Below are positions 2,977-38,683 of a DNA stretch of 38,683 nucleotides, piece after piece. A program made the position numbers and the translations under genes. Positions within the stretch are counted from its first letter, which is position 1; each line of letters begins with the position of its first letter. The notes under the pieces are model-generated. The model was given only the letters and a program-made list of their open reading frames with translations, was not told the origin of the DNA and made no database searches. The DNA is from Octopus bimaculoides. Lineage: Eukaryota. The stretch is from contig NC_068986.1 in assembly GCF_001194135.2 (NCBI RefSeq), positions 62,397,178-62,435,860 on the forward strand, given 5' to 3'.

Positions 2977-3543
2977 TATATATATTTTTTATCTTTTACT
3001 GGGGCACTGCCTTGAATTTTTTACTTACAACTGTGAGTTATTCCTGCACAGTTGTGCCTATATACATCTAGACAGATTGCTTTTAATGGCATACAGGCAT
3101 ACAGAAACAATATAGCAAAGAGGTCAATACCTCTTTGCTATATTGTTTCCCTCATTGATTTTCCTCTCCTCATTATCCTGATGAACTTTAACTTATTCTT
3201 CTGCTTATAACTGACATTAAATATTTTGCTCAAGAACACAACCCGATGTCTTTATAACTAATCAGTTGGAAGGTCAGTGCAAGTGCATCTGAAACTCTAA
3301 CCTTACTGATGGCCATTACATCTACATTAAGTGATTTGAGGTCCTTTAGCTTGTGACCTTGCTTCTAAGTCAACTCTGGGTTACTCATTGGAAACCTGTA
3401 TCCAACAACATTATTGTCCACAGATTATGTATCAAAAATAAGAATAAAAACTAATAAACCAATATCCTCAACTTAACTCATGAGCAGTTAATTAACTGAC
3501 TATATCAGCTATAGAGAAAGTGTGACAAATAAAATATACTTAC

Positions 3544-3663
3544 CAAGACAAAAATGGTTGTCAATGAGCTGAAATCCTTTGAAGCAAGAACATTTGTAAC
3601 TTCCATCTATATTGTTACATATTTGATGGCATAAACTGTGGTTGTTCTGACATTCATCAATAT
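3544..3663 (-). CDS. Internal coding exon, calcium-binding EGF-like domain (most 3' exon seen in window)
   Basis: Acceptor tttttctttattgttattcAG (3665-3664), 120 nt, phase 1-1, donor G|GTAAGT. Peptide [40 protein letters not shown]. Missed by the ORF track. Confidence 0.92.
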
Positions 3664-5810
3664 CTGAATAACAATAAAGAAAAAGCAGATGAGGATAACA
3701 TATAACTTGCTTCTAGGAAAGGGCAGATTGCATGAAGTGTACGTAAGATGTGTGATACTTGCAAAATAGTTATATTTTAGCATTAAATTTTGGATAACTG
3801 CAGATTGAAGCAATAACCTCATGCATGAGAAGCATGTTGACAGGGTAGTTGAGAGAGTGACTGACCATTAAAGGCATCACTTGATATGTACAAGAATTGC
3901 AGCTGTGTTGTCATGGCTATGTAATTTGAATGGATGACATCTTTTAGATGAAAAATGTACTTTATGCTGCAGGTGGAAGATACATGAGAAGATTAGAGAA
4001 GATAAAGAAAGAAGTGGCATGGTTTAGTCTCAGCCTGTGATTACTAAACAGATGTCACAGGTTTGAAAAGTATAGTGGTATGGGGCTTTAGCATACCCAG
4101 CCAATCCACTTAGTACTGGAAAATGAATGCTAGAACGATGATAATGATAATAATGATCCATTGCATACCAGAATTCATTATCTTCAGCAATTTTCATAAG
4201 GGACAATTTTTCTCATGAATAATTCCAAACTCAACAGATCTAAGTTCTGAGTTGTTAATGTGGGAAGTAAGTTATATGTGTTGAAGTTGTTCTTGAAATA
4301 ATTAATAATTGTATTGTAATAACGTTTTAACATAGAATAAACTGTTGTACATCAGCCATCATACATAGAATTGTATAGAACTATTAGAAACAGACTTCTG
4401 AATAATGGAAAGGTAAACTGAGATGATTGGAGGATCTGGTCTAAAGCTATGTTCTATAGTAGTTTTTCTTTATCACTGGCGTATGCTAACACAAGCAAAC
4501 AATTTCTAAATTTTATAGTACAGTTGTTACTTAAAGCAGCATGTTATTCCTTCTCTGCATTGTGTATTTATTGCTAGGTGGACTGGGTCACTTGAGAATC
4601 AAATATTTTGGTCACAGATGACAATAATAGGTATAATCTGCCAACTCTTATGGCTAGTTATCTAATACTTAAATGACTTGCTCATTCACAGTACCTAAAA
4701 AAGTATGTATTCATCATCATCATAATTTAATGTCTATTTTCCATGCTAACATGGGTTGGATGGCTTGACAGGAACTGGCAAGGCCAGGGGCTGCAGACTT
4801 TATTTATTCTTAGTAATCTCCTTGTAAAAATTACATTATTTATGGGACATTTAAATATGTTTTGAACAGAAAATATTTTTCTCATCTTCCAGTTTCATAA
4901 GTAAACTCATGACATTTACATTGGTATTGTCACACAACCTGTATGTATATAGTTCTGTAATTTCCTTTAATGTTTATAACTATTAAATGTATCTTTTTAG
5001 TTTAGTTTATGTGAAATGTATTTTCATATTCTTAGTAGAATTTTCAACTTCTGTTAACATTTTCTAATAATAGGATAATTTTATTCAGTTGAATTCATAG
5101 TCCACCATCCTCCCTCTCTTATTTATTGTTATCTTTGTAGCCTCTTCCTCCTAATCATTGCAATCACCATCACTATCCTCTCCTCGTTATTACCATTTGA
5201 TATTGGATTATACAGTCTAATATTGAATTAAACATGGTAGTCCATTATCAATAACAATGTATTGACATGCACATTAGAGAAAGCAAAAGGATTAGTTTCA
5301 GGAATTCATATGGAAAAACTTTAAACTAGAATGAACTCTTCTCTCACTTTGAAAGCCCAGGTTGAGAGTTGAATTTGTGAACTTTGATTTATTATTCAGA
5401 AAAAGTTTAAAAAAAAAAAAAAAATGGAAAAAAACTCATTTGAAATGATAAAACTAATCTCATATTTTTAATGAATTTTTTTCTTAATACAAGAGAGAGC
5501 AAATCTATGAAATATTATAGGTGGCCTCTCCCATGATGATATGGCAGATGCGAAATAAAATGACATAAATCAGAGAATTCTTTTATTTTTTTCATAAAGT
5601 GTATTTATGAAAAATTTTGTTTCTAGCAATGATTTTCAAAATTTATTAAAAACTAAAAATGAAATAAACAAACAAATAAAATCCTTTCTTTTGTTACTTT
5701 AATCAAATAATCCTTTGATTTTTTATTATTGTTAGGAAAGTTTAATGTTAAACTCTATTAATGAAGTGATTTAGAGCTGTAGTTGAGATGTGTATCAAAT
5801 TATCAACTTA

Positions 5811-5918: not shown

Positions 5919-7250
5919 TTCCCATACACACGAAAGCAAAGAAAATAATAACAAAATTGAGAAAAGCTTTGGTGGCCCTGTAGTCCAGACACAAGATAAC
6001 TCATAATTTTAAAACAGAATTTTGATGAGAATTGAAAATTTTAGGGGATATCTTAAGATCTGACAACATACCAGGGTATTGAAATGACTGCTATTCTAGA
6101 TTATGTTTTGATAGAGTTTACTTAACTCTGTCTTTATGATATTGTGAGACAGCTACTTCACATGTCACATAAGATGTGACATTTGACTAAATTAATTTCC
6201 CAATACACTGTCATGGCATGAAAACTACAAATGCCATTATATCAAAGTATATTATGTGTGTGTGTTTAAAACATATAGAGTCTTTTGGTGGAATAAAACT
6301 TAAAATTTTTTTGTGGATTAGTTACAGGAGGAACAGCAGAGACTGCTGGGGGGCGGAGTTTATGATATGTAGCCTGAATGATTGCAATAGAATGTACTTT
6401 GCAAAAGGCACCCAGGAGCCTGGTGATGATGGATGATAACATTTACCTAAGAACAACAATAGTCGTTCACAGTTTCCATTTACCAAATTTCAGTTACAAA
6501 GCTTTTGTCAACCCAGAGTTATGAGGGAAGACACTTGACTAATGTGCCATGCAGTGGGATTGAACCAAAAATCACATAATTGTGAAGCTACCTTCTTATT
6601 GCATTATTTATACAAAAATATCCTAAATGTATATATTACCAAGCCTTATACAAATTAAAATATATTATTGAATATATCTACACTACTGAAACTATATAAT
6701 TATAACCTCTGGACTTGCTAGCTTGTATACCTAAATATTTGGTAGCACATCTAAATTATTCATACATATGTGTTTGGGTGATGTATGCAAATTATCTGTG
6801 CTGGTAGAGGAAAACTACATTTATAATTAGGTATACTGAATTTATTGGTTTTATTCCTTTATCGTTGTTTAGTTTATAATCCAACCGGTCATAACCATCC
6901 CACTTGTAAATCTAGAACTATATTATCCAACAAGTCTTTCCTTTTTAAGACGAAGTGTAATTTGAGTGATAAGGTGTTGTTTGGGTGTTATTCTTAGCCA
7001 GTCAAATGTTTATATAGAGGTTAATTCATATAATTGTCTTATATTGGAGATTAACTGCTGACAGCTGACTCAATCGATTCTGAATTACAAAAATCTATAA
7101 GCAATATGCTTAGCTCTGCTTTATGCAGTGTAATACAAATGAAAAACAGTCGACTGGTAATGTCATTATAGTGTAAGATATAATGCATTGTGATACTTGT
7201 TCCAACTCTTTGCATACTGAATATAAATCCTACCAAAATCAAATTTGCCT

Positions 7251-8610: not shown

Positions 8611-8730
8611 CTAAACAGTTTGTAGTGTTAACTAGTGTATATCCAGAGTTACACGAACACTTGTAGCTTCCATCAGAATTAATACAGTTCTGTTGGCATC
8701 CACCATTTCTTACTGAGCATTCATCAGTAT
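8611..8730 (-). CDS. Internal coding exon, calcium-binding EGF-like domain
   Basis: Acceptor tttctctgttttAG (8732-8731), 120 nt, phase 1-1, donor G|GTAGGT. Peptide [40 protein letters not shown]. Confidence 0.93.
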
Positions 8731-8929
8731 CTAAAACAGAGAAATATATAAGTCTTGTAAAAAATGCTAAAAATTGAAAGAGAAAACAAAATGAATGAGA
8801 GTGTTTCATAACATTTAATTGGTTCCTTGAAACAATATAAAGACAACATCATTCCCTAATTTCCAAGAGACTTCTATAAGCCAGTGCCTAGCACATGTTT
8901 TAAGGTGTAAAGATAAATTTCACATTCTG

Positions 8930-9670: not shown

Positions 9671-10269
9671 AATTGGCCTATTTAATATTCGAGGGGAGCT
9701 GGTTGATTACTAGCACCACTGGTACTTATTTCACTGACCTTAAAGGGATGAAAGGCAAAGTCAACCTCAGCAGAATTTGAACTCAGAACATAAAGACGCC
9801 CAGCATGCTAATGATTCTGCCAGCTTGCCACCTTAATGGCCTTTTTAATATAAAAAATTGATAAACTCTAAAATATTTTTACTGGCTTTACTTGCCTTAC
9901 CTTTTCCCATATCTATTAATCTACATTTGATGTCAACAAGAAATTCATTTTTAGGATATTTAACAGTAATGTATATACTTCATGTGACACTAATATTTCT
10001 ACACTGTTGTTTGTTTTTTTGGCTGGTACTTAATTTTTTTTGCTTTTAAATTAATAGTATAGTAAGTTTTAATCATTTAAAAAAATTTTAAACTTTGTTG
10101 CTTATTTTGAAATAAACTTATGTTTATTTCAAAGCAAAAATCATATAATACAACCATTTTGAAGCACTAATTTTTATCTACTGATTTATGCTAATGGTTG
10201 CTTTGCCTCATTACTTTAAATTGTCAAATTAAATAAGAAAAAAAGAACCAAATTCAAGTGATTTCATGG

Positions 10270-14885: not shown

Positions 14886-16227
14886 CAAAGTCTTAGTAAG
14901 TAGGAAGGCGAACAAATCACAAATTCCTTCAGGTAGATGGCTCTGCTTGATCTGTAGCAAAGGCGTAGGTAGAAACTCCAGAAGATGTACCCAATGTAAG
15001 TTATGGACACATAAGAGGTGCAGCAATATCAAAGGAAGGTTAGCTGGGAAGATAGTTTTTGTGTATGGCAGATATGCAGAGGTGTGATAAACACTGAAGA
15101 TGTACAGACTACAGATACCATCACATGCTAGGGGGAAAAACTAGAAGTAGTTGATAGTTTCTATTACCTAAATGACCATTTGAGTGTGGCTGATGCCAGT
15201 GCTGCCTGACTAGCACCCACATCAGCGGCAGGGGTGGTTGCTCTGAGAGTGTAACTGCTAGAATAAGAATAGTCCGGGCAAAGTTCAGAGAGCTCCTATC
15301 TTTGCTGGTAACAAATGGCCTCTCGTTCAGAGTAAAAGGTAGACTGTATGATGCCTATGTGCGAACAGCCATGCTACACGGCACTGAAACATGGGCGGTG
15401 ACTGCTGAGGATATGTGTAGGCTTGAAAGAAATGAAGCTAGTATGCTCCACTGGATGTGTAATGTGTGCATACACATTAAACCCTGAGAGAAATGTTGGA
15501 CATAAGAAACATCAGATGTGGTGTGCAAGACAGATGACTGCACTGGTATGGCTATGTGGATGAGGACATCTGTGTGAAAAAGTGTCACACTCTAACAGTG
15601 GAGGGAACCTGTGGAAGAGGTAGACCCAGGAAAACATGGGATGAGGTGGTGAAGCATGACCTTCAAACGCTGGGCCTCATAGAGGCAATGAGAAGTAACT
15701 AAGACCTTTGGAGATATGCTGTGCTTGAGAAGACCCAGCAAGCCAAGTGAGATTGTAGTCATGGCCAATGTCAGTATCACATAGCTGACCTGTTTACAAG
15801 CACCCTTCAGTCGTTGGTCAATATGCTGTGCTTGTAAAGACGTGTTGAATCGAGTAAAATCGTAGTTGTGGCCAATGCCTGTGCTGCCTGACTGGCACCC
15901 ATGCCAATGGCATGTATAAAGCACCATTTGAGTGTGGCTGATGCCAGTGCTGCCTGACTAGCACCCACATCAGCGGCAGGTAAAAAGCACCATTCAACCA
16001 TGGGTGATGCCAATGCCACCTGACCGGCTCCTGTGCCTGTAGCATGTAAAAACACCCACTACACTCTTGGATTGGTTGGCATTAGGAAGGGCATCCAGCT
16101 GTAGAAACCTTGCCAAATTAGACTGGTACCTGGTGCAGTCTCCTGGCTTGGCAATTCTCAGTCAAATCATCCAACCCATGCCAGCATGGAAAGCAGACAT
16201 TAAACGACGACGATGATGATGATGACA
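14886..16227 (+). mobile_element. RTE-clade LINE 3' fragment
   Basis: GLSFRVKGRLYDAYVRTAMLHGTETWAVTAEDMCRLERNE; 3' UTR repeats and (GAT)n tail. Confidence 0.88.
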
Positions 16228-17134: not shown

Positions 17135-17290
17135 TGGCTGCATGGTTAAGAAGCTCACTTTACAACTATGTGGTTTCAGATTCAGTTCACTGTATGACAC
17201 TTTGGACAAGTGTCTTCTACAATAACCCTGGGCTAACCAGTGCCTTGTGGGTGAATTTGGTAACAAAAACTGTGTAAGCCCATCATATAT
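17135..17290 (+). mobile_element. Partial tRNA-derived SINE
   Basis: catggctgcatggttaagaagc..ggacaagtgtcttctac..gtgggtgaatttggta matches the head of the 2562 family. Confidence 0.65.
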
Positions 17291-18863: not shown

Positions 18864-19629
18864 NNNNNNNNNNNNNNNNNNNNNNNNNNNNNNNNNNNNN
18901 NNNNNNNNNNNNNNNNNNNNNNNNNNNNNNNNNNNNNNNNNNNNNNNNNNNNNNNNNNNNNNNNNNNNNNNNNNNNNNNNNNNNNNNNNNNNNNNNNNNN
19001 NNNNNNNNNNNNNNNNNNNNNNNNNNNNNNNNNNNNNNNNNNNNNNNNNNNNNNNNNNNNNNNNNNNNNNNNNNNNNNNNNNNNNNNNNNNNNNNNNNNN
19101 NNNNNNNTATATATATATATATATATTACCTGAAATGTATACATACATTATGTATATACAAATGTATATATATACATTACCTGAAATGTACAATATTATA
19201 TATCCATTATGGCCAATCTCACCTGCTGGTTTTGTGCTAGGGATTTAACAGAGTGTTAGGTAACAATTTGATTATGTAACCCTATGCCAATATGGAAGTT
19301 GCCAATATGGAATGAAATATGGTGACTGCTCTCTATTGTTTGAAACTGATTAAGATCAGCTGTAATGGATATATATACAATACTGTACACTTCGGATAGT
19401 ATACCCACTCTATTGACAGATATAAAAATGCATTTTTTCCTGACTTATGGACTCTTAGATAACTTACACAGACACATGTATATATCATTTCATTTCATTT
19501 CAAAGTTTCAGCTCAGAGCTGCGGCCATNNNNNNNNNNNNNNNNNNNNNNNNNNNNNNNNNNNNNNNNNNNNNNNNNNNNNNNNNNNNNNNNNNNNNNNN
19601 NNNNNNNNNNNNNNNNNNNNNNNNNNNNG

Positions 19630-19750: not shown

Positions 19751-19975
19751 CACACACACTTGTGTGTGTGTTTGTTTGCTTGCGTTCCCATTATTTGACA
19801 AGTGGTGTTGATTAATTTATGTCCCTGTGACTTAGCAGTTTAACAAAAGAGACTAATAGAATTAGTATCAAGCTTCAAAAATAAGTACTGGGATTTTTTT
19901 TCAACAAAACCCTTCAAGACAGTGCACCAGCATAGTTGCAGTTCAGCGACTGAAACAAGTAAAAGATAAAAGATA
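19745..19975 (+). mobile_element. 3' half of tRNA-derived SINE
   Basis: ttatgtccctgtgacttagcagtt..gcaccagcatagttgcagttc..gaaacaagtaaaaga. Confidence 0.65.
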
Positions 19976-20636: not shown

Positions 20637-20750
20637 TGATACACATATTCAGCTTTTGATATCCAGCATTGCATATACAAATGTAACTACCATCAGTATT
20701 TCTACAGCTATGTTGGCATCCCCCATTAGCAGTTGAACATTCATTGATGT
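20637..20750 (-). pseudogene. In-frame cbEGF exon with non-canonical acceptor (probable skipped or pseudo-exon of host gene)
   Basis: 114 nt open frame (D)[37 protein letters not shown]. The acceptor position reads ttttacttcGC instead of AG, and the donor A|GTAAAA is weak. Not in the supplied ORF track. Confidence 0.8.
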
Positions 20751-21739
20751 GCGAAGTAAAACACAATAGAATTTACAGTAAAAAAATTCTATTTTTGCAA
20801 TATATATGCAGAAATTATTATTAATATTACAAGAGAAAATATGATAAATACATGTTTATATCATTACTTCCTAAGTAAGTCTCGCCATTGTGGTTGTTTG
20901 GAACTAAGTACAATTGGATGCTTAGCCAGAATGGATCATCAGGGAATACTTTATTGAATTATGTTACATACATATGTACATATCTACATACATGCATTCA
21001 TGTATATATATCTACATATGTATGTGTAAATTATCATCACCTTTTTTCACTTTATTTTTCCCCATGCACATTGTGCCCAGATTGGCTAATTCAGGAAAAA
21101 AATCATATCTTGAGTTAAAATAATCACCTGATAGTGGTTGAGGGCTCATTTGAACCACAATTTTAAGGGCTATCAGCTAGAATGAAAATTATTTGTTTTT
21201 CCTTTGTTTATGGGGATCTGGGTTCAAATAACCAAATCAAGGCATATCGACCAAAATTACCCTTTTGGTGTATTGCGGTTAAAAATGATTATCTGGCAGG
21301 GGCTTTTAAAGGCTCCTCATTTACTCATTTTTTTTTTTCTCTTTTGAGGGTTTGATTTGACTTACACTTTCATCACCCTGCAATGATTTTCTACTCTCTG
21401 AAAATTAATCTTCAGAAGCCAAAATTGCAATTCTGCACTTTGTTTTGTCCATTTTGTCCAATAGCCCAACTTCTCAGTTTCACTTTCTATGTAAAGTTTG
21501 CCATTTTGCTGACACAGTATTTTTTCCTCACTTGTTTGGTGCTTCACCTTCCTATTGGTCATTCTCTCAAAGCTGTTATCAATTGCTGTTGTGCCTTGTT
21601 GTGTGCTTGCATTTTGTTTGCTTGTTTTGGGAGTATGTGTGCATCAACAGCGATACTGAATCATTACAACATGTTTGGGCCAATTGCCATGGGTTGTTGC
21701 AGTTTCATCTGTTTGGGTTGTTCTTATGACTTGTTTTCT

Positions 21740-22124
21740 TTTATTTTTTATTCTTTTACTTGTTCCAGTCATTTGACTGTGGCCATGCTGGAGCACTGCC
21801 TTTAGTCAAGCAAATTGACCCAAGGACTTATTCTTTGTAAGCATAGTACTTATTCTATCAGTCTCTTTTGCTGAATCGCTAAGTTATGGGGATGTAAACA
21901 CACCAGCATTGGTTGTCAAGCGAAGTTGGGGGACAATCATAGACACACACACACATATACGATGGGCTTTTTTCAGTTTCCATCAACCAAATCTACTCAC
22001 AAGGCTTTGGTCGGCCTGAGGCCATAATAGAAGACACTTGCCCAAGGTGTCACACAGTGGGACTGAACCCGAAACTATGTGGCTGGTAAGCAAGCTACTT
22101 ACTACACAGCTACTCCTGCATATG
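21740..22124 (-). mobile_element. tRNA-derived SINE nested in the Transib element
   Basis: Full copy of the 2562 family on the minus strand. Candidate TSD tgttttct at 21732-39 and 22125-32. Confidence 0.85.
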
Positions 22125-22193
22125 TGTTTTCTCTAATTTGAGCTCAGGGTGACAAAGCCAATTTTATGCTGATGTATTTTCTTTATCTTTTAG

Positions 22194-24346
22194 GTAGAAA
22201 ATCAATTCAAAATGAAGTGGAATAACAAAGAATCATTGAAACTATTTCTTTGTTATACCAAGCATTTGCCTAAAAACATCAAGAAGGGCAACAAATGTAA
22301 TGAAGTAGCGACCATGTTCATAGAGAATCTTCCAAAGCCACCTCCAGACCATTGGTGTATCAGTATGAAATTCTTGAGAATGTTGGATTCAAAACCTTGC
22401 AATAGGAGTTCTCAAGATGATGTGTCCAAATGGAAATATTTGGTTTTCTTTGAGCATGTTCAAGCATCAGATGAAACAAAGAAACCAAGAGGTAGACAAA
22501 GTGTAACCCTCGGTGATGTACCTTGTTTGAGAAAACAATGTTGATTTTGAAAGATGTGCTTTGTTGGGTAGAACAATTTGCTGAGGAACAGAATGTAACA
22601 AAAGAAGTTGCTCTGCAGATGGTAGTTGAATGCAATCAGACTTGGCATTCCTCTGTTAAGCCAACGAAATGCACAATTCCTGTTGACAATGCAGTAGCAT
22701 TAGTATATAATGATAATTTTTCACTGCATCAATATGAAATGATTAGAACATTGTGTCTCCCGCATGGTGTAGTATTCCTGACTAGAAACAAAGTAGATTG
22801 CGTAAAAAAGAAGTTTCATACTACTATTTCCAGTTATCAATTGAAATCGTCAGTGGACACAACTAAGTTAATCAATGAAACAGTTGCAACATTGATCAAA
22901 TTGAGTGAAACTAAACCAAATCATGAAGAAGGCAGTTACCACTTAGTAGGAGAGTTTGATGTCGATGGATCAGAATCTCATAAAATTCACCAGCAGTTGA
23001 TCAACACTTCTCTTGCAACAGAAGAAACTGCACATCTCATTCCAACAAAGAGTAATTCTTTTGTGTTGTCTAGTTACTGTCCTCTTCAGTTGCACTACAA
23101 TGATAGTGTTCTTTGGACAAACCCAGTGCCAAACAGCACCAGTTTTGCATGTCCTGTGTCACTTAACAGGTGTGTTGAGGAATGAGATGTTCTTGCTGTT
23201 GAACTTGAACCATCTTTTGAAGTGATAAGGGGTGAGTATCAGTCAAATGTTCTTGATGACAAAATTATCACTGTCCATTGCAAAACAGAGTGCTCCAGGG
23301 TTGATGGAAAAACGGTCTCCCACCTTCAAGGTGATAGTGGAGCATTCTGTTATCTGTGTCATACATCATGAGCTGATGCAAACAATGTTGGAGTGATATC
23401 TGAAGGTTTTGATATTACCAAGGACTATGCTTCTTGCAAAACAGCATGGGAAAAGCTGTCAGCTGGGGACATTGCCTATTTGAGTAGTGAGAGACAAGAA
23501 CAATGTTATGAGAACGTCATCAAAGCTGATCTTTTTTGTTTTTCAGTTCTTCACTTTAAGCTGCAATCATTGGATTTTACACAGAAAATTTTCTACCACC
23601 CCGTTGGCAGTCAGAAGATCGGGAGTGAGACAGCAAATCTTAATGTGATGCGATTTGTGGGTCGAGTCAAAAAGAATGCATTGATGCTATCCATTCCAGT
23701 ACAGGAATGTTAATGGACATACCAAGTTGTTCAGGGGGAAACATCAATACTGGTCCCCTGGCTGATCAGTTCTTCAGTCTGGTTCACCATGATACAATTT
23801 GTTCATTGATTCTCAATGAGGAAGATTGACAAAACTACTGGATCTTTTTGTCATTCATGAACACCATGCTCACTGTTATGCAATCAGTTAATGCAGCAAA
23901 GAAAGTGCGAGTTGATGTGTTGAAGTCACTGGGCATAGAGCTGATGATGCACATGAAGAACATGTTCCTTAATGAGAAGGGGGCAGCCTTGGGTGATGAT
24001 CATTCCATCTTTCCACTCAATGTGTGCATACAGCTGGCAGCTCTTTGTGTTAAATGGTAGCCAATCAATTGCTAAATGGAATGCGAGTCCAGTGGGGAGT
24101 TGGAATAAACATGTAAGGTCATTTCTAAGTGGTCCTTCTGCAAGATCTTGCCAGCTTTCAATCGAGGATAACATCCATGACATTTTCAGAAGAATGTCCA
24201 TCATGTTGCATCCAGCAATTGCTTTGAAATGTCCCAGCCTAAGTTGTTCTGTTTGTGGTGTAGTTGGTCACACAGCTCGTTCTTCAAAACATAAGGTGTT
24301 TGCTTTGACAGAAGAACAATCAGTAATCAAATCACTATATTACTGA
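22194..24346 (+). pseudogene. Transib/RAG1-like DDE transposase pseudogene (~717 codons reconstructed)
   Basis: Joins ORFs 22212-22544, 22523-23185, 23393-23713, 23848-24060 and 23972-24346 via frameshifts near 22535, 23670 and 23985 and in-frame TGA at 23183, 23369 and 23827. Motifs: RGRQ..VEQFAEEQ (NBD-like), VALVYNDNFSLHQYEMIR, EFDVDGS (D 22964), WTNPVPNSTSFACPV, VDGK (D 23303), GAFCYLC, SVLH, GGNINTGPLADQFF, PWVMIIPSFHSMCAY, WNASPVGSWNKHVR (expected catalytic E is GGG at 24095) and CSVCGVVGH (24245-24271). A phase-0 acceptor tttctttatcttttAG precedes 22194. Confidence 0.88.
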
Positions 24347-24407
24347 CTGGTCCATGTTACACATATTTATCGTTTGGCATTGTTGTTCCAATATTTGTTG
24401 TGAATAA

Positions 24408-24620
24408 GGTGGTTAGCTGGCAGAAGTGTGAGCATGCTGGGCAAAATGCTCAGTGGTATTTTGTCTGTCTTTATGTTCTGAGTTCAAATTCCCCTGAGGT
24501 TGACTTTGCTTTTCATTCTTTCAGGATCAATAAATTAAGTACCAATTGCATACTGGGGTTGATCTAATTAACTGGTCCCCTCCCCAAAAATTTCAGGCCT
24601 TGTGCCTATAGTAGAAAAGA
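24408..24620 (+). mobile_element. Second SINE family nested in the Transib element
   Basis: tctgagttcaaattc..gactttgcttttcattc..aagtacca body. 17-bp TSD atatttgttgtgaataa at 24391-24407 and 24621-24637. Relatives at ~9680-9840, ~30200-30310 and ~33470-34010. Confidence 0.85.
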
Positions 24621-25714
24621 ATATTTGTTGTGAATAATAAGTGATCAGTTTTCACAATTTAGTGTAAATGATTCTGATTTTCTTTGTGAATCATGGTGGT
24701 AGGATAGGGCAGGGTGTTTCATGGCTTTTTCCTTGGGGCGGGGGTAGACTACAATAAAGTTTCAATCAAGGATTTGTTGGGAATATTTTCTTTTTGTTAT
24801 TTCGTATTTTAGCCCTTCTTCAATTTCGGCGTAAGCAAGGCGATATCCTCCAAACTGGAACCTGACCTTCCTAATCAGATTTTTACCCCATAAAATTGGC
24901 TAAATACCAAAAAAAAGTGCGTTTATGATCAATTATTTCAAGAAATTTATCAGGTTTTGAGTTCATTTTATGTTTCTTGTTTTTATACTTGTTTAGTCAT
25001 GTTGGGAGTCAATAACTACTGATTTTACCCAATTTTTGTTGGTTTTGATGTTTGACACCCAAATTGGAATTATACTTTCTGTGTAGCTTTTTAACCCCTT
25101 TGAACTGATTTTTTTCCCACAGTTTACATAAAATGTTGAGGATGTCAAATATGTTAGCCCTTAATATGTCAAAATTTGTCCTTTTTTAAAGATGATCAAG
25201 TTTGAAGGGGTTTTACCAAAAATTTGAATATTTCTATTAAAAACTCAAATTCTTCATGCATCCCCTATTTTCTCAAATTTATGTTGGCCTATGCACTCTA
25301 GACTGTAACTTGAGTGAAAGACAATAAAAAATGCTTCTAAATAAGTTCAAACAGAGGTTAAAAATCTTTTTTTTTTTGTGAAAGGGAATATGCTTAATCT
25401 TATGATACTCCAAAAAAACGTAAATTTTGTTAAATTGGCTGACTTTAAAGAGTTATAAAAATTTAACCATACATTATTTTAAACTCAGGTTTTTTGCTTT
25501 GTGATCTCTTGAGTTTAGAGAATCAGAAAATATGCATTTTAAACATCTGGGAGAAGTTTCCAAAAATGATAGATTCCCACTCTGGGTACAATGTGCCATG
25601 CTTGCATTGGTTGGACAGTTTTCTTCAGCTCAGTGTATCACCACTTGTATCACCACTTGTATCACATCTTTCACTAATTCTTCCTCTTCATTTTATTTGG
25701 CTTGCTTTGCACTT

Positions 25715-26837: not shown

Positions 26838-28230
26838 ATCATCATCATCATTTAACGTTCATTGACCATGCTGGCATGGGTTGGATGGTTTGACTGGGCT
26901 GGCATGCTGGAAGGCTGCACCAGATTCCAGTTTGATGTGGCATGGTTTTCTATGGCTGGATGCCTTTCCTAATGCCAACCACTCTGAGAGGTAATGGGTG
27001 CTTTTACATGCCACCGGCATGGGTGCCATTTGCATGACACCAGGGTGCATTTACATGCCACCATCACGGGTGCTAATTTGTGTGACACTGGTATCTGCCA
27101 CGACTGCAATTTTGTTCGACTTGATGGATCTTCTTCTCAAGCACAACATAATGCCAAAGCTCTTGGTCATTGCCTCTGTGAGGCTCGACACTCAAAAGGA
27201 ACTTAGCCCCTGTGCTTCCATGAAGCTCAATGCTCAAGGAACTCAGCTACCGTGCCTCCGTGAGGCCCAACGTTCAAAAGATGTTCTTTACGTACCACCA
27301 GCATGGGTGCACTTGGCTTGATGGGTCCTCTCAAGCACAGCACATTGCCAAAGGTCTCAGTCACCAATCATTGCTTCTGTGAGGTTCAAAGTTCAAAGAT
27401 TATGCTTCACCACAACGTCCCATGTTTTCCTAGGTCTACCTCGTTGTGAACTACATATTGTCCTATTACGTGAGGGATCCACAGTTAGACAGCAGCACTT
27501 TTTTTACACAGCGGTCCTTGTCCATATGCATCACATGACCATACCAACACAGTCGTCTCTCCTGCACACCACATCTGATGCCTCTTATGCTTAACTTTTC
27601 TCTCAAGGTGCTTACACTCTGTTGAACATGCACACTGACATTGCACACCCAGTGAAGTGTGCTGGCTTCATTTCTTTCAAGCCTACGTATGTCCTTGGCA
27701 GTCATAACCCTTGTTTCACTGCCATGCAGCATAGCTGTTCGTACACAGGCATCAAACAATCTACCTTTTGCTCTGAGAGAGAGGCCCTTTGTTGCTAGCT
27801 GGCATAGGAGCTCTCTGAGCTTTGCCCAGCCTAATCTTATTCTCACAGTTACACTCTCAGAGCATCCACCTCCACTACTAACTTGGTCACCTAGATAATG
27901 GAAGCTAGCTACTGACTCTAGTTTGCCCCCACTGGCAGTTGATGGAGTCTATTTTCTGCACATTTTCAGCGTTTATTGTACCTGTACACCTTCCAAATAC
28001 AAAAGTTAGTTTCCCTGTTAACCTTCCTCTGATGTTGCTATACCTTTTATGTATCCAAAGCTTACACTGGGTGCATCTTATGGTGTTTCTACCTACACCT
28101 TTTCTACAGAATGAGCAAAGCCATCTACACGAAGGGATTTGTTATTTGTCTGCCTTCTTACTTACTAAGACTTTGGTTTTTGCTAGGTTAACTCGAAGGC
28201 CCTTTGATTCTAGACCTTGCTTCCACACCA
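26838..28230 (-). mobile_element. RTE-clade LINE 3' fragment
   Basis: ORF 27466-27846 RIRLGWAKLRELL..GLSLRAKGRLFDACVRTAMLHGSET..RRLCWYGHVMHMD; upstream Cys-rich SICRKGVGRN..C.QCKLW block. Confidence 0.9.
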
Positions 28231-29452: not shown

Positions 29453-30294
29453 GCATGCACACCTAACATATTCTAACAGGGCAAATTATTTATCTATTTC
29501 TTACACCGAGAAGGGTCAATGCTCATAGTTTTGTGATCTTTTTAGATTAATAGGGATAACTGGGCTAAGTGTTAAGGTGATTGTATGCTAATATGTGTCA
29601 TAATTTACAGAGTATTAATCTCATCTTTAGATATGAAAGATAATTCAAAATTCACAGCTACACTATGTTTCAGAAGGATTGATCTATGATCATCATTTGG
29701 TGTATTATTCTTGAATGTGTAAATAATACCAGACAAAATTCAAATTATGAATTCCTTAAACTATGGACACATCTTGGAATAATAACTGTCAAAAAAGAAA
29801 CTGACTGAAACTGCAGATTTAAATATTGTAAAATCTTTCATCTCTAATAATGAGATTTGGAAACAATTGTAATATTATTAATAAACAGCTATGCTAATTG
29901 TTAATCTTTGTTAAATCATCAATTTTGAGGGATTTCACTTGTTATCTCTGTTCTTTTCATCCTGGACTTTTTTGGCAACTACCCCCACATCATCCCAATC
30001 TTTCTTTAAATGCAGCAACGAGCATTCCCGTTGTTGAAAATTTTGATATCTTAATTTTGTTATCTTTATCAAAGTAAATAATTTGTAGGAGGGAGCCATA
30101 GTAAATTGATTTGGTCCAAATACATTACTGGTGCTTATTTTACCAACCACAGAAAAATAAAGGAAATATCAATTCCTCTAGAGTCACAACAGGATTTTAG
30201 AATCAAAACTCTTGTGATATTTAGTCATAGCTCTTTACATTCTGAGTTCAGATTGTGTTGAGATCAACTTCATCTTTCATTCTTTCAGAGGTTA

Positions 30295-30410
30295 GTAAAT
30301 AAGCACCAGTCAAATACTTAAACCTGTCAAGAGCCCTAGGACTCAGAAGGCTGTAAATAAGCACCAGTCAAATACTTAAACCTGTCAAGAGCCCTAGGAC
30401 TCAGAAGGCT
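30295..30410. repeat. Perfect 58-bp tandem duplication
   Basis: gtaaataagcaccagtcaaatacttaaacctgtcaagagccctaggactcagaaggct occurs twice, head to tail. Confidence 0.95.
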
Positions 30411-31893
30411 GGAACTTAACCCACAGGATGGGATGTTAGTCTGTTGCTGGGTTAACTTTCCAGTTCTTACTGGAATTCACTTACACCTGAGTGAACTGGA
30501 GCAATGTGAAATGAAGTGTTTTGCTCAAAAACGCAATGAACTGCCCAGTTCAGGGATTGAAATCGCAATCATAAGAACATGAGTGAAAGACTCTAAAAAC
30601 TAGGTCACATGCCTTTACTATCAGTCAAGTACTGAGCACAATTTGATACTCTGATGAAGCATCCTTGATGTGAATGGAATTATAATAACAAAGATGCATT
30701 CTGAATATAGTGAGATGGAACTAAATACTGAAAGGCATTTAGAGAGGAGCCCTACCATTTCTGCTACTCCCTACCTCTTATATCTATGAAAGCATTTCTC
30801 ATACCATCCAGTGACAATGTGACATCCTAGTATTAACCTTTAAAATGCAGATGTAACTTAATTCATGCAAGAGAAACTTAATCACATTCGATTCTGAGAT
30901 AATTATGATGGGGTTGACTAAAAAAATTCCAGTAATCTTTTTCAGAAGAACATTATTCTCAACATTACTGAAAGTACAAAGGATTTTGGTTACTAAGTAT
31001 TTCACCTGTGAGCAGATGTTAAGTTTGTGGCAGGCTCAAATACACTTTTTTATTGAGTAAAGTTCTCAAACGTTCTGCAGGAATGCAGCACTTCCGTCAA
31101 TAATTTGTATTCTAAGTGCAAACTGAAGCCATCGTTGTGAACTACATATTGTCCTATTATGTGATGCTTAAGTTTCAGATATATTGTTGTGTTATATCCT
31201 TTCCCTAAATATTTTATGGCTATTTTGTTCTTCAGAATTTTACAGTAGTTATCCATCTTCATTGAAGTTGATTCATTGTTCTATTTCTCTGCTTCTCATT
31301 CCCCTCTCTATCTCTCTCTCACACACACACACGTACTCAATTTCTTTTCTCAAAACTTGTACCAAACATTACATCTTTCATGTCATCTGCTTTATAGTAT
31401 TATATCATCTTTTATTTAATACTGCATTACACTAAGCTCTTCATTTTCAAACTTCACTTTGATCCCCTTCACCAATCTTTGTCTCCCCTCTATATCTGAA
31501 ACTTAAGAGAGTCATGGCTGTGTGGTTAAGAAGCTTGCTTTGCAACCATTAGGTTCCACTGTGCTGTACCTTGGGCAAGTGTCTTTTACCATAGCCCTGG
31601 TTTGACCAATGCTCTTGGACCAAATTTGGTAAACTGAAACTGTGTGGAAGAATTGTAGATTGAACGAATCAATACATAGAATAATATAAATATTATTAAA
31701 ACATGCAATAATTAGTCTAAAAAACATTTAATTCTTAATTACATTTTCAGCTCTGACGCTATGATTTGCTGAATTTTCAGTTTTTATTCCCTAATATTTC
31801 AGAAATTAATTTTTCTACCAGTAATAACCTAAATAACAACATTCCTAATTATTGATATTTTTAAGATCCATAATTCTATAATAATTAACTTAC

Positions 31894-32016
31894 CAACACA
31901 CTGTTTCCCATTCTCCATCAGTCTGTAGCCTGTCCTACATTGACATTGATAACTCCCAATAGAGTTCTCGCAAATTTGTTGACAGCCACTATTTTCGATT
32001 GAACATTCATCAATGT
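31894..32016 (-). CDS. Internal coding exon, calcium-binding EGF-like domain (host gene; most 5' exon seen in window)
   Basis: Minus strand: polypyrimidine tract + ctAG acceptor (32018-32017), 123 nt, phase 1-1, donor G|GTAAGT. Peptide [41 protein letters not shown] has 6 Cys with EGF spacing and the D-x-D-E-C / C-x-N-x-x-G-S-Y Ca-binding consensus. Confidence 0.92.
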
Positions 32017-33469: not shown

Positions 33470-34010
33470 GGAAATGAACTGACAGATTATTAGAGTGCTG
33501 GATAAAATGCTTAATGACATTTTTCATAGTTACTCATATTTTGAGTTCAAATTCTGCTAAGGCCATCTTGCCTTTCATCCTTTTGGAGTTGATAAAATAA
33601 GTACCAGTGGAGTACTACCCTACAGAAAACAAAAAAATATAAATAAATAGAATTCAGGCCTATAATAGAAAGAATTACTCGTGTGATAGATTGGCAAAAT
33701 TGTTAAAGTATCAGACAACATGCTTTGTAAGTAGTTTTTCCAGATCTTTATATTCTGAATTCAAATCCTGCTTGGTTAGCATTGCCTTTCATCCAACAAG
33801 TGATATTATTACTGTTCTGGACAAAATACTCAGTGGTGTGTCTTCTGGCTTTTTACGTTCTGATTTTGAATGTTGCTGAGGTTGATTTTGCCTTTCATCC
33901 TTTTGGGGGTTGATGAAATAAGTACCAGTTAAATAATGGTATTGGTGTAATTGACTATATCATTCCCCAAAAATTTCAGGCCTTGTGCCTATAGGAGAAA
34001 GGATTATTGT
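33470..34010 (+). mobile_element. Cluster of three partial copies of the second SINE family
   Basis: Repeated ttcaaattc..gcctttcatcc..gataaaataagtaccag blocks at ~33540, ~33760 and ~33860. Confidence 0.7.
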
Positions 34011-35647: not shown

Positions 35648-37110
35648 ATTAACTGCTAGCATGGGTTGGACGATTTGACTGAGGACTGGTGAACTGGAAG
35701 GCTGCACCAGGTTCCGATCTGATCTGACGGAGTTTCTACAGCTGGATGCCCTTCCTAACGCCAACCACTCCGAGAGTTTAGTGGGTGCTTTTACGTGCCA
35801 CCAGGACAAGGGCCAGTCAGGTGGTACTGGCAACAGCCACACTCAAAATGGTATTTTTTACGTGCCACCTGCACAAGAGCCAGTCAGGTGGTACTGGCAA
35901 CAGCCACACTCAAAATGGTATTTTTTACGTGCCACCTGCACAAGAGCCAGTCCAGCGGCACTGGCAACGACCTCGCTTGAATGTTTTTTTCACGTGTCAC
36001 CGGCACAAGTGCCAGTAAGGCGACGCTGGTAATGATCCCACTCAAATGGTGCTATTTACGTGCCACTGGTATGGAAGCTAGACAGCTGCTCTGGCAATGA
36101 TCATGCTCAGACGGTACTGTTAGTGCTCCAATGGCACAGGTGCCAGTCATCGAATTTGGTTCAATTACGATTTCAATTTCACTTGCCCCAACAGGTCTTC
36201 GCAAGCAGAGTTTAGTGTCCAATGAAGAAGAGGTTGGCATGGGTGCCAATCTACAAATTTAGTTCGATTTCGATTTCACTTGCCTCAACAAGTCTTCGCA
36301 AGCAGAGTTTAGTGTCCAATGAAGGAAAGGTACGAATAAGTGGGCTGGCTACATCCCTAGCAGAGGCCTTGCATTATGGTCTCAGTTGGCTTGCCGGGTA
36401 TTCTCACGCACTGCATATTTCCAAAGGTCTCGGTCACTAGTCATTGCCATGGTGAGGCCTAATATTCAAAGGTTGTGCTTCACCACCTCATACCAGGTCT
36501 TCCTGGGTCTACCTCTTCCACAGGTTCCCTCAACTGCTAGGGTGTGGCACTTTTTCACACAGCTATCCTCATCCATTCTCGCCACATGACCATACCAGTG
36601 CAATCATCTCTCTTGCACACCACAACTGATGCTTCTTAGGTCCAACTTTTCTCTCAAGGTACTTATACTCTGTAGAGTATGCACACTGACATTACACATC
36701 CATTGGAGCATACGCATGTCCTCAGCAGACACGGCCTATGTTTCACTGCCATGTAGCATGGCTGTTTGTACACATGCGTCATACAGTCTGCCTTTTACTC
36801 TGAGCGAGAAGCCCTTTGTCACCAGCAGAAGTAAGAGCACTCTGAACTTTGCCCAGGCTATTCTTATTCTAGCAGCTACACTTTCAGCGCACCCTCCCCA
36901 GCTACTAACTTGGTCACCTAGACAACGGAAGCTATCAACTACTTCTAGTGTTTCTCTCTGGAATGTGGCAATAGTTGTTTTCTCCACATTTTCAGTGTTT
37001 ATTGTTCCTGAGCATCTGCTACATACAAAACCTATCTTCCTAGTTAGCCTTCCTCTGATATTGCTGCCCCTCTTATGTGTCCATAGCTTACACTGGGTAC
37101 ATCTTATGGA
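35648..37110 (-). mobile_element. RTE-clade LINE 3' fragment with tandemly repeated 3' UTR
   Basis: ORF 36736-36987 LEVVDSFRCLGDQVSSWGGCAESVAARIRIAWAKFR..GSET; identical 67-bp tandem copies at 35812-35945. Confidence 0.9.
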
Positions 37111-37326: not shown

Positions 37327-37347
37327 NNNNNNNNNNNNNNNNNNNNN

Positions 37348-38683
37348 ATATACGTTTATATATTCGCTTTGCAAGATTCTTAGTGTGAAATCATGTGTTG
37401 AAACAGATATTGTTGTATTTGGGGATGGTCATGTTGCCAGTTTAGACAATAAAAACACACGCACTATATATTTGGTGTTAATTTGCTTCAGCTTTATTTT
37501 ATTTTTTACATTAATTATATTTCGGCCAGAGTTCTTTCGTTACACTTCTGTGACCTCATCAGTGGTTCTTTGCTTTCTTCTTTCTTATTTGTGTGTCTTT
37601 CCTTACTAACAATCAGCCATTTTGTATTTTGTATTCCAATTGTATTTGTCTTTATTTGCGCATGCATATACCCCTATGTGTGTCTATGGGAGTGCCCATA
37701 TTATCTGTATCCCCTGTTTATACACATTCGTTTAATTTGTTTTTATTTATTTGATCATGTGTTTATACCTACTTATTATTTTTTTTTCTATTGTTTCTTT
37801 TTTTGTATTTAATTTAATTTAATTTTGTTAACGTATATAGTTATTTAATTCCATTTGTTGATCTGTATATTGTTTTATATTTTGTTTATATTGTTATCAG
37901 TTTATGGGGATCTTATTCTGTCATATGTTGTGGTGTGTTAGGGGTGTGTGCTAGTGTTCCATTCCAGTTTCCTATTCAGACTAGGTGTATCTTCTATTAT
38001 GTGTGTAGCTTCTGTAATTTGTCTAAGTGTTACATCTGCTCTATGTGTGGACAAGATTTTAACTTCTATGTTGTTGAGTGAGCACCAGTGTTCCTGCTCG
38101 GCATGCTGGTACAGAACCGATGAGCTCTTCTCTTCCTTTATACGTAACGATAGGAATGGGATTTGCCCACTCTATAGGAGCAAGTCATGGAACACCATTG
38201 AAAGGACTAAGAAAAAAATAGGGAAGGCCAGCTCATGGTATGATAGCCACAAATACCAGAGTGTCATGTTCGTCGACACCACACCTAGAGGTGAACTGGC
38301 ATACTGCTTTAGAAGGGCCCTAGCCAAACTTAAGCTAAGAATTGAGGTTGTTGAAAAGCCAGGCAACCCTATCAAATCCCTAATCGGTAGAACCTACCCT
38401 TTTAGTAGAACCCCTTGCACTGATAGGAACTGTACTGCATATAGATTTAGCTCACAAACAAACTGTAAAGCCAGAAATGTAGTCTATAGTATAAGATGTA
38501 CAGAGGGATGATGCAGTACAAGACAACGACGTACGTAGGGGAAAGGGGACGGAACATAGGAGAACGGGTAAATGAACATTGGAAGGTACTTAAGGAAGAG
38601 AAGAGCTCATTGGTTCTGTACCAGCATGCCGAGCAGGAACACGGGTGCTCACTCAACATAGAAGTTAAAATCAGATAATACAG
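37348..38683 (+). mobile_element. Penelope-like retroelement (same family), inverted 3' segment followed by forward linker/GIY-YIG region; runs off window
   Basis: Peptides VMFVDTTPRGELA..VVEKPGNPIKSL..PC..CKARNVVYSIRC and YVGERGRNIGERVNEHW..LYQHAEQEH. 37348-38138 is the 3' end of the family on the minus strand, and 38058-38138 is inverted relative to 38591-38672. Confidence 0.85.

Follow-up and report, generated by a model that had tools for sequence, protein, structure and literature searches.

Among transposons, Transib elements are the nearest relatives of the RAG1 recombinase, and recombination signal sequences (RSSs) are presumed to descend from Transib ends. The superfamily is defined by a 5-bp target-site duplication, by ends in which a CAC heptamer is followed by a spacer and an A-rich nonamer, by a transposase of ~700 residues, and by a length of 3-4 kb; a duplication of 5 bp is made by no other eukaryotic DNA transposons (PMC1131882). 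The end consensus is a 38-bp structure consisting of CACAATG, a spacer, and AAAAAAATC (Kapitonov & Jurka 2005, PMC1131882). Asymmetric, 12/23-like ends have been described for Transib5 of D. melanogaster and for Transib2 and N1-N3 of A. gambiae (PMC1131882), and they are reported for all Subgroup I Transibs (Tao et al. 2022). Here we describe a Transib element at positions 21067-25595 of a 38,683-nucleotide stretch of the Octopus bimaculoides genome (assembly GCF_001194135.2, contig NC_068986.1, positions 62,397,178 to 62,435,860); this whole stretch is referred to below as the window. We regard it as very probable, at roughly 0.93, that the locus represents one ancient insertion of an autonomous Transib-superfamily DNA transposon, in antisense orientation within an intron of an EGF-repeat gene.

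The locus has the 5-bp duplication, the CAC ends, a single gene for a homologous transposase of ~700 residues and, when later insertions are subtracted, a length of ~3.9 kb. An intact gene capable of supporting transposition is missing from the window copy, which describes the state of this copy and is not a criterion for the family. Each of these properties of the window element has already been described for Transib families. What is new here is a set of three related elements from other assemblies that carry perfect 5-bp duplications and share the same terminus.

The element spans 4,529 bp, and both of its boundaries can be read directly (Table 1). The 19-bp terminal inverted repeats (TIRs) agree at 17 of 19 positions and both begin with CACATTG, which is one base away from the Transib heptamer CACAATG and equally one base away from the RSS heptamer CACAGTG. 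Perfect copies of CCATG flank the repeats, and a preliminary description of the locus was accurate on the repeats and the duplication. When the whole window was scanned, the TIR pattern was found at the two element ends and nowhere else. A chance test considered CAC-initiated pairs lying up to 3 kb on each side of the open reading frame (ORF); a single CAC...GTG pair combines a match of at least 17/19 with a perfect 5-bp flanking repeat, and such a pair was absent from all 200 shuffles. The pre-insertion site is predicted to read CACTTTATTTTTCC-CCATG-CTTGCATTGGTTGG, with a single CCATG. The same description had called the transposon complete; this holds for the boundaries only, as the interior contains two nested repeats and the gene is dead.

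Table 1. Features of the window and of three complete related elements. Positions of L003, L010, and L011 are those of their own contigs; register shifts compare the second block at the two ends of one element.
Feature	Position	Strand	Remarks
Transib element	21067-25595		best register shift 10 bp, 10/18 matches
Left target-site duplication CCATG	21062-21066		read directly, same as right copy
Right target-site duplication CCATG	25596-25600		read directly
5' TIR CACATTGTGCCCAGATTGG	21067-21085	+	heptamer CACATTG at 21067-21073
3' TIR CACATTGTACCCAGAGTGG (reverse complement)	25577-25595	-	read directly
5' second block GGAAAAAAATCAT	21094-21106	+	A-rich; starts +28 from terminus; spacer ~21-22 bp, RSS23-like
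3' second block GGGAATCTATCATTTTTGG	25560-25578	-	GGAA starts +19; spacer ~11-12 bp, RSS12-like
5' subterminal block GGTTGAGGGCTCATTTGAAC, 20 bp	21136-21155	+	from alignment and blastn
Transib transposase pseudogene	22212-24346	+	~711 codons, single exon
Transposase frame segments	22212-22535, 22526-23683, 23665-23988, 23957-24343	+	frames 3, 2, 1, 2; tblastn with intact 715-residue relative
Nested insertion 1, SINE-like, ~378 bp	21747-22124		in 5' non-coding part of the element
Nested insertion 2, 212-bp SINE	24408-24619		perfect 18-bp duplication AATATTTGTTGTGAATAA
Host cbEGF exon	31898-32005	-	upstream of insertion in gene orientation; its end MENGKQCV is the start of XP_052824743.1
Host cbEGF-like exon candidate	20641-20763	-	Pfam EGF_CA 33.5 bits; ~300 bp from element 5' end
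Host cbEGF exon	8612-8734	-	97.6% (41 residues) to XP_052824743.1; 100% (47 residues) to UPI00071DD467
Host exon after 8612-8734	3545-3664	-	
L003	2018-5973		3,956 bp; perfect duplication TAATG; best register shift 10 bp, 15/18 matches
L010	3031-7147		4,117 bp; perfect duplication CATCT; intact 715-residue ORF; best register shift 9 bp, 15/18 matches
L011	2518-7524		5,007 bp; perfect duplication CATTT; best register shift 9 bp, 11/18 matches

The transposase gene falls into four tblastn segments separated by three frameshifts, with in-frame stops at 23183-85, 23369-71, and 23827-29. When stitched together, the product of ~711 residues identified 12 relatives, including intact proteins of 703-715 residues that are 44-57% identical to it over 99-100% of its length and are themselves covered at 100%, and on this basis the frame is a complete single exon. 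The number of breaks given previously was thus correct, and the length of ~717 codons given with it is reduced to ~711. All three DDE residues are present in the family. The window copy retains both catalytic Asp codons (22964-66 and 23303-05), while the Glu of the family-invariant ESWNK motif has become Gly (E629G, 24095-97). The Cys codons of ZnC2 lie at 23348-50 and 23357-59, and the first His of ZnH2 at 24014-16; the second ZnH2 His is replaced by Tyr (H607Y, 24029-31). Near the C-terminus, a Cx2Cx3GH zinc knuckle is encoded at 24245-24271. In total, 30 of the 162 family-invariant residues (18.5%) are altered in the window copy. With three frameshifts, three stops, both active-site and zinc-ligand replacements, and this proportion of changed invariant residues, the window copy is an old fossil, immobile by itself and without a functional product.

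The same lesions bear on the idea that, in place of transposon debris, the locus is a RAG1-like host gene, domesticated or still functional. In favour of this idea are the one long ORF region and the intact relatives found elsewhere; against it stand the frameshifts and stops and the losses of the catalytic Glu, the ZnH2 His, and 30 of 162 invariant residues. The antisense position in an intron, the two nested SINE (short interspersed nuclear element) insertions, and the retention of TIRs and duplication also speak for a transposon, and we consider a host gene to be extremely improbable.

Assignment of the transposon to Transib is based on sequence, fold, and ends. The only sequence match of the stitched protein in the PDB is the Transib transposase of Helicoverpa zea (HzTransib, 6pqn; E = 3e-5). 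A profile of the family matches the same protein with E = 2.2e-32 (115 bits, residues 9-464 of 497), and RAG1 chains with E = 2e-4 to 5e-3 (~22 bits). The profile aligns the second Asp motif (smvDGkm) with TMIDGKI of HzTransib and tgyDEKl of RAG1, and it also aligns the zinc ligands of CxxC and the motifs GGNTN.G and E..NK with both proteins. The first Asp motif, GkfgvDGsG, is aligned with HzTransib only (KWGFDGAS). An AlphaFold2 (AF2) model of one relative (P0001), built from a nine-sequence alignment, gave 49 Foldseek matches with E of 1e-3 or lower, all of them to HzTransib, RAG1, or the RAG-like (RAGL) protein of amphioxus, BbRAGL; the next match has E = 1.9. With the Pfam RAG1 model (PF12940), whose threshold is 25 bits, a distant relative (P0285) passes at 47 bits and another (P0265) narrowly fails at 24.8 bits. 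Furthermore, an exhaustive library search returned representatives of 2,996 related clusters, and 291 have E of 1e-30 or lower; the superfamily is large and widespread. Among 44 close relatives, none has an informative source name, and two are labelled 'hypothetical protein'.

A transposase of another DDE superfamily (hAT, P, CMC/Chapaev, or Kolobok) would make the CAC termini and the 5-bp repeat a coincidence. Pfam offers no direct family match for the window protein, as this account would allow; with the ORF fragments and the stitched protein as queries it returned weak zinc-knuckle matches alone, and a PDB search with one 220-residue fragment returned noise alone. However, the sole PDB sequence match is a Transib transposase, the profile and fold searches return Transib, RAG1, and RAGL proteins with nothing pointing towards hAT, P, or any other superfamily, and the duplication length unique to Transib (PMC1131882) recurs in three relatives. 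The chance that a different superfamily is responsible is very small.

The related elements were found by scanning contigs that encode relatives, and these contigs come from other assemblies. Three of them are complete (L003, L010, and L011), and lone ends were recovered from L008 (5') and L002 (3'). All five and the window element share the terminus CAC[A/T][G/T]TGTGCCCAG, also written CAC[A/T][G/T]TG[T/C][G/A]CCCAG, and the exact RSS heptamer CACAGTG is found in L003 and L011. The preliminary description had named differing termini in other copies as a refutation; three relatives show the same terminus together with perfect 5-bp duplications, and the comparison thus comes out in its favour. 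Full termini were not found in L001, L005, L006, L007, and L009, where the contigs end at or inside the element ends. The 5' subterminal block GGTTGAGGGCTCATTTGAAC is conserved at the DNA level, being common to L006, L008, and L009 and partly present in L001 and L005.

Two of these contigs, L006 and L007 (Logan SRR33215970 and SRR33215978), are 3,290 bp long, and both of their ends lie ~10-12 bp inside the family inverted repeats. Their shape is the output expected from a de Bruijn assembly of a multi-copy element with differing flanks, and hints at a compact repeated element of ~3.3 kb in that sample. L010 is located on a 1.18-Mb contig (ENA ERZ25066843); its ends match at 14 of 15 positions, and its GAAACAATTAA second block is clean and stands at two spacings. 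Judging from its sequence, L010 looks intact and is a candidate for an active element.

Beyond the outermost ~15-19 bp, the 5' and 3' ends diverge consistently in all four complete elements, and a second, A/T-rich block follows (GAGAAAAAAT in L003, GAAACAATTAA in L010, and GGAAT.. in L011 and the window). In 4/4 complete elements the 5' end has this block 9-10 bp farther from the terminus than the 3' end does, giving heptamer-to-block spacers of ~21-22 bp (5') versus ~11-12 bp (3'). The ends are thus two-part and asymmetric, and go beyond plain 19-bp inverted repeats. In the window, AAAAAAATC occurs at 21096-21104 within the 5' second block, and the 5' end can be written as CACATTG, 22 bp, and AAAAAAATC, which corresponds to the published 38-bp structure of Transib ends (PMC1131882). 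L002 and L006 keep the 3' second block in their 3' ends as GGGAATTTAAT.ATTTTTG; across the four elements, the block is degenerate at the window 3' end and clear in the relatives.

Several points weigh against the assignment or restrict its support. At the best shift, the second blocks of the two window ends match weakly (10/18), and the exact AAAAAAATC run of the 5' end is not kept in relatives L008 and L006. For these reasons, part of the resemblance to the AAAAAAATC nonamer may be due to chance. The exact 'nonamer' was accordingly dropped as a conserved feature; what the relatives keep, in place of the A-run, is a TCATA motif and the position at which the A/T-rich block stands. The quality of the AF2 model is mediocre, with a mean predicted local distance difference test score (pLDDT) of 60.7 and template-modeling (TM) scores of 0.26-0.40, so that the fold evidence consists of Foldseek probabilities and not of a good superposition. 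The Pfam RAG1 model gives no match to the window protein. Finally, a single octopus copy was examined, and the termini of the relatives all come from other assemblies. Even so, profile, fold, and end structure together confirm the placement in the Transib/RAG1 lineage.

Within this lineage, the preliminary description had left the choice between Transib and RAGL open by naming them together. Its Transib/RAG1 part stands; the RAGL part does not, because the element has a single gene, no RAG2-like partner, and no RAG1 N-terminal region, and its sequence is much more similar to Transib than to RAG1. These are the same criteria by which Martin et al. (PMC7204232) separate Transib from RAG1L, and by them the element is Transib proper. 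The longest ORF on the minus strand 3' of the transposase has 51 residues, and no RAG2-like gene was found there; one transposase gene is called in each of L003, L010, and the near-full-length L006 (~3.3 kb). Pfam detects no RAG1 N-terminal family in 13 members, and the N-terminal 150 residues, which comprise a GRP motif and helices, have no significant relative in the PDB.

One could still suppose a RAGL transposon of the ProtoRAG type, with a RAG1-like and RAG2-like gene pair, in which decay has left the RAG2-like gene unrecognizable. Molluscs are known to contain RAGL transposons, and the C-terminal Cx2Cx3GH of our family is the start of Cx2Cx3GHx4C, the motif that defines the RAG1L C-terminal tail (CTT), named CTT* or CTT1 (PMC7204232). 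Some room for a lost gene also exists, since ~1.0 kb of non-coding DNA remains 3' of the ORF after removal of the nested SINE. However, the tail motif is also found in Subgroup I Transibs (Tao et al. 2022) and for this reason does not discriminate RAGL from Transib. The family scores 115 bits with HzTransib against ~22 with RAG1, and BbRAG1L is not among the sequence matches. On the opposite strand 3' of the transposase, no ORF exceeds the 51 residues given above, and the one-gene relatives L003, L010, and L006 leave no room for a kelch protein of at least 350 residues. The terminus is also unlike the protostome RAGL consensus CACTWMCAAACKTYKBB (PMC7204232). A decayed RAGL transposon is very improbable on this evidence.

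As a Transib, the element is best compared with HzTransib (6PQN). The two have in common the 5-bp duplication, CAC ends with the two-part arrangement of heptamer, spacer, and A-rich block, and a single gene of ~700 residues with DDE, ZnC2, and ZnH2 in an element of ~3.9 kb before the nested insertions. Unlike HzTransib, the family has ~150 additional N-terminal residues that include the invariant GRP motif, carries the C-terminal Cx2Cx3GH zinc knuckle, and spaces the CxxC and the conserved His by 62-75 residues in place of 31 (65 versus 31, ~34 more); the window copy differs further in being dead and in containing nested SINEs. In mouse RAG1, C730 and H795 are 65 residues apart by established numbering. 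AF2 confidence is below 50 in the CxxC-to-His region. An equivalence of this region to alpha11-alpha12 of RAG1 was considered and is unsupported by hhalign: with an approximate RAG1 segment, the C-terminal third alone was aligned (probability 61%), and the region in question was left unaligned.

Subgroup I offers a further comparison. The family profile scores 162.7 bits with MleTransib_3931 of the ctenophore Mnemiopsis versus 119.4 with HzTransib, the former sequence having been machine-read from the PDF supplement of Tao et al. and possibly containing errors. Its alignment runs unbroken through the CxxC-to-His region into the knuckle (PVCKKCSGRGHIGRYC vs PtCSvCGevGHtars). The CTT1-bearing members of Subgroup I also resemble our elements in having asymmetric inverted repeats, here with the 9-10 bp shift seen in the window, L003, L010, and L011. 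The window clade differs in that the last Cys of Cx2Cx3GHx4C is lacking and Cx2Cx3GH is followed by TARSxRH; relatives farther away, among them P0018, P0093, and P0108, have the motif in full. Taken together, the sequences fit a putative affinity with Subgroup I of Tao et al.

The asymmetric insect families are similar in that roughly one helical turn separates the spacer lengths of the two ends. Relative to the gene, our elements have the long spacer at the 5' end and the short one at the 3' end, whereas the insect families are described with the reverse orientation (PMC1131882), and the hosts are a cephalopod and the sources of marine assemblies instead of insects. With vertebrate RAG1 and its RSSs, and with RAGL, the element shares a homologous catalytic core (E~2e-4; Foldseek probability 1.0), the CAC heptamer, the 5-bp duplication, and the knuckle resembling the C-terminal tail. 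It differs from them in having neither a RAG2-like partner nor the zinc-finger region at the N-terminus of RAG1, and the similarity is far below that to Transib.

HzTransib and RAG act on DNA by nicking, then by hairpin formation, and finally by strand transfer into cuts staggered by 5 bp. By homology, we infer similar chemistry for this family. An active copy would have encoded a single-exon transposase of ~711 residues, equipped with the DDE site of RNase H type, the ZnC2/ZnH2 site, and the C-terminal Cx2Cx3GH knuckle. The enzyme would bind both ends of the element, each made up of a CACATTG heptamer block and, farther in, an A/T-rich second block, with ~21-22 bp between heptamer and second block at the 5' end and ~11-12 bp at the 3' end. 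One long-spacer end would be paired with one short-spacer end, a combination that the enzyme may prefer, and the element would then be excised, with cutting by the nick-and-hairpin route as in HzTransib and RAG. Reinsertion into a target cut with a 5-bp stagger would generate the duplication, here CCATG. By analogy with CTT* in the amphioxus enzyme, the knuckle may read the sequence beside the heptamer, and the N-terminal module with the GRP motif may read the second block. Identity of this N-terminal region with a nonamer-binding domain is speculative, given that it has no significant match in the PDB.

The insertion site lies in a gene with calcium-binding EGF (cbEGF) exons, four of which were located, all of them on the minus strand and to either side of the element (31898-32005, 20641-20763, ~8612-8734, and ~3545-3664). 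The preliminary description had proposed an EGF-gene intron in an apparent mollusc, and both proposals are borne out: exons among these match XP_052824743.1 of O. bimaculoides, a cephalopod, and the RefSeq model splices the exon at ~31900 to the exon at ~8734, so that the element is contained in that intron, in antisense orientation. The exon candidate nearest to the element (20641-20763) is well formed but not used by XP_052824743.1; it is an exon that is alternative or missing from the annotation, or else a duplicate in decay. A second protein record, UPI00071DD467, matches 8612-8752 at 100% and 3524-3664 at 89%, the alignment extending past the exon boundary; its mate in the 90% cluster is XP_052824743.1, annotated as 'complement component C1q receptor-like [Octopus bimaculoides]'. 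No effect of the window copy on the host gene is visible.

The interior of the element was enlarged by later insertions of two high-copy repeats. Insertion 1 is flanked by an imperfect 15-bp duplication (13/15; 21732-21746 and 22125-22139), and blastn finds further copies in the rest of the window at 2115-2552, 2565-2973, 19816-19975, 17147-17290, 6470-6566, and 31553-31642. It belongs to a high-copy SINE-like family of ~380-440 bp, with two adjacent copies at ~2.1-3.0 kb. Insertion 2 is bounded by the duplication copies at 24390-24407 and 24620-24637, and relatives of it are found in the window at 33817-34008, 9720-9835, and 30232-30308; it holds a B-box-like GTTCAAATTCC. The perfect 18-bp duplication suggests that this SINE arrived well after the Transib. 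ARAGORN identifies no tRNA genes in the window. Subtraction of the nested inserts with their duplications (230 and 393 bp) from 4,529 bp leaves ~3.9 kb, which agrees with the relatives and with the published range of 3-4 kb (PMC1131882).

Other repeats lie outside the element. Short arrays of related 47-67-bp units (..TGCCACC.GCAC..G.GC..) at 15867-16024, 26994-27088, and 35789-36066 are probably parts of another octopus repeat family. A 126-residue ORF on the minus strand (27466-27846) ends in ...RRLCWYGHVMHMDKDRCVKKV, which may resemble the C-terminus of a reverse-transcriptase ORF from a long interspersed nuclear element (LINE). Similarly, a 187-residue ORF on the plus strand (37948-38511), which runs towards the window end, closes with NVVYSIRCTEG, which may be similar to the start of the GIY-YIG motif of Penelope-like elements. 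Neither ORF has a Pfam match, and a Pfam search with four window ORFs other than the transposase gave none. Assembly gaps (N runs) are present at 859-1546, 2214-2223, 18864-19107, 19529-19628, and 37327-37347, which marks the sequence as a draft scaffold, and none falls within the element.

Only one intact Transib ORF emerged from a survey of mollusc genomes (PMC10294476), our literature search for Transib together with cephalopod or octopus found no description, and Octopus is unmentioned in the supplements of Tao et al. The octopus copy, together with intact relatives that have the same terminus, therefore provides a lophotrochozoan data point. The asymmetric two-part ends and the knuckle extend the existing picture without changing it, since both are reported for other Transibs (PMC1131882, PMC9435367). 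The asymmetry of the ends in four elements, along with the knuckle and the long zinc-binding domain, nevertheless bears on the origin of the 12/23 rule and of the DNA-recognition modules of RAG1. For RAG origins, the interest is mainly in the apparently intact relatives, such as L010, and not in the window copy. A more far-reaching view, which we think unlikely, is that the window copy is the fossil of a RAG2-less lineage of cephalopods and marine invertebrates that joined an RSS-type heptamer, a conserved spacer asymmetry of ~12/22 bp, an N-terminal region with the GRP motif as a possible nonamer-binding domain, a knuckle like the C-terminal tail, and a zinc-binding domain of RAG1 length. If this were true, a relative that looks intact and possibly active, such as L010, might serve as the closest living model in which to ask whether pairing of the 12/23 type predates the acquisition of RAG2.

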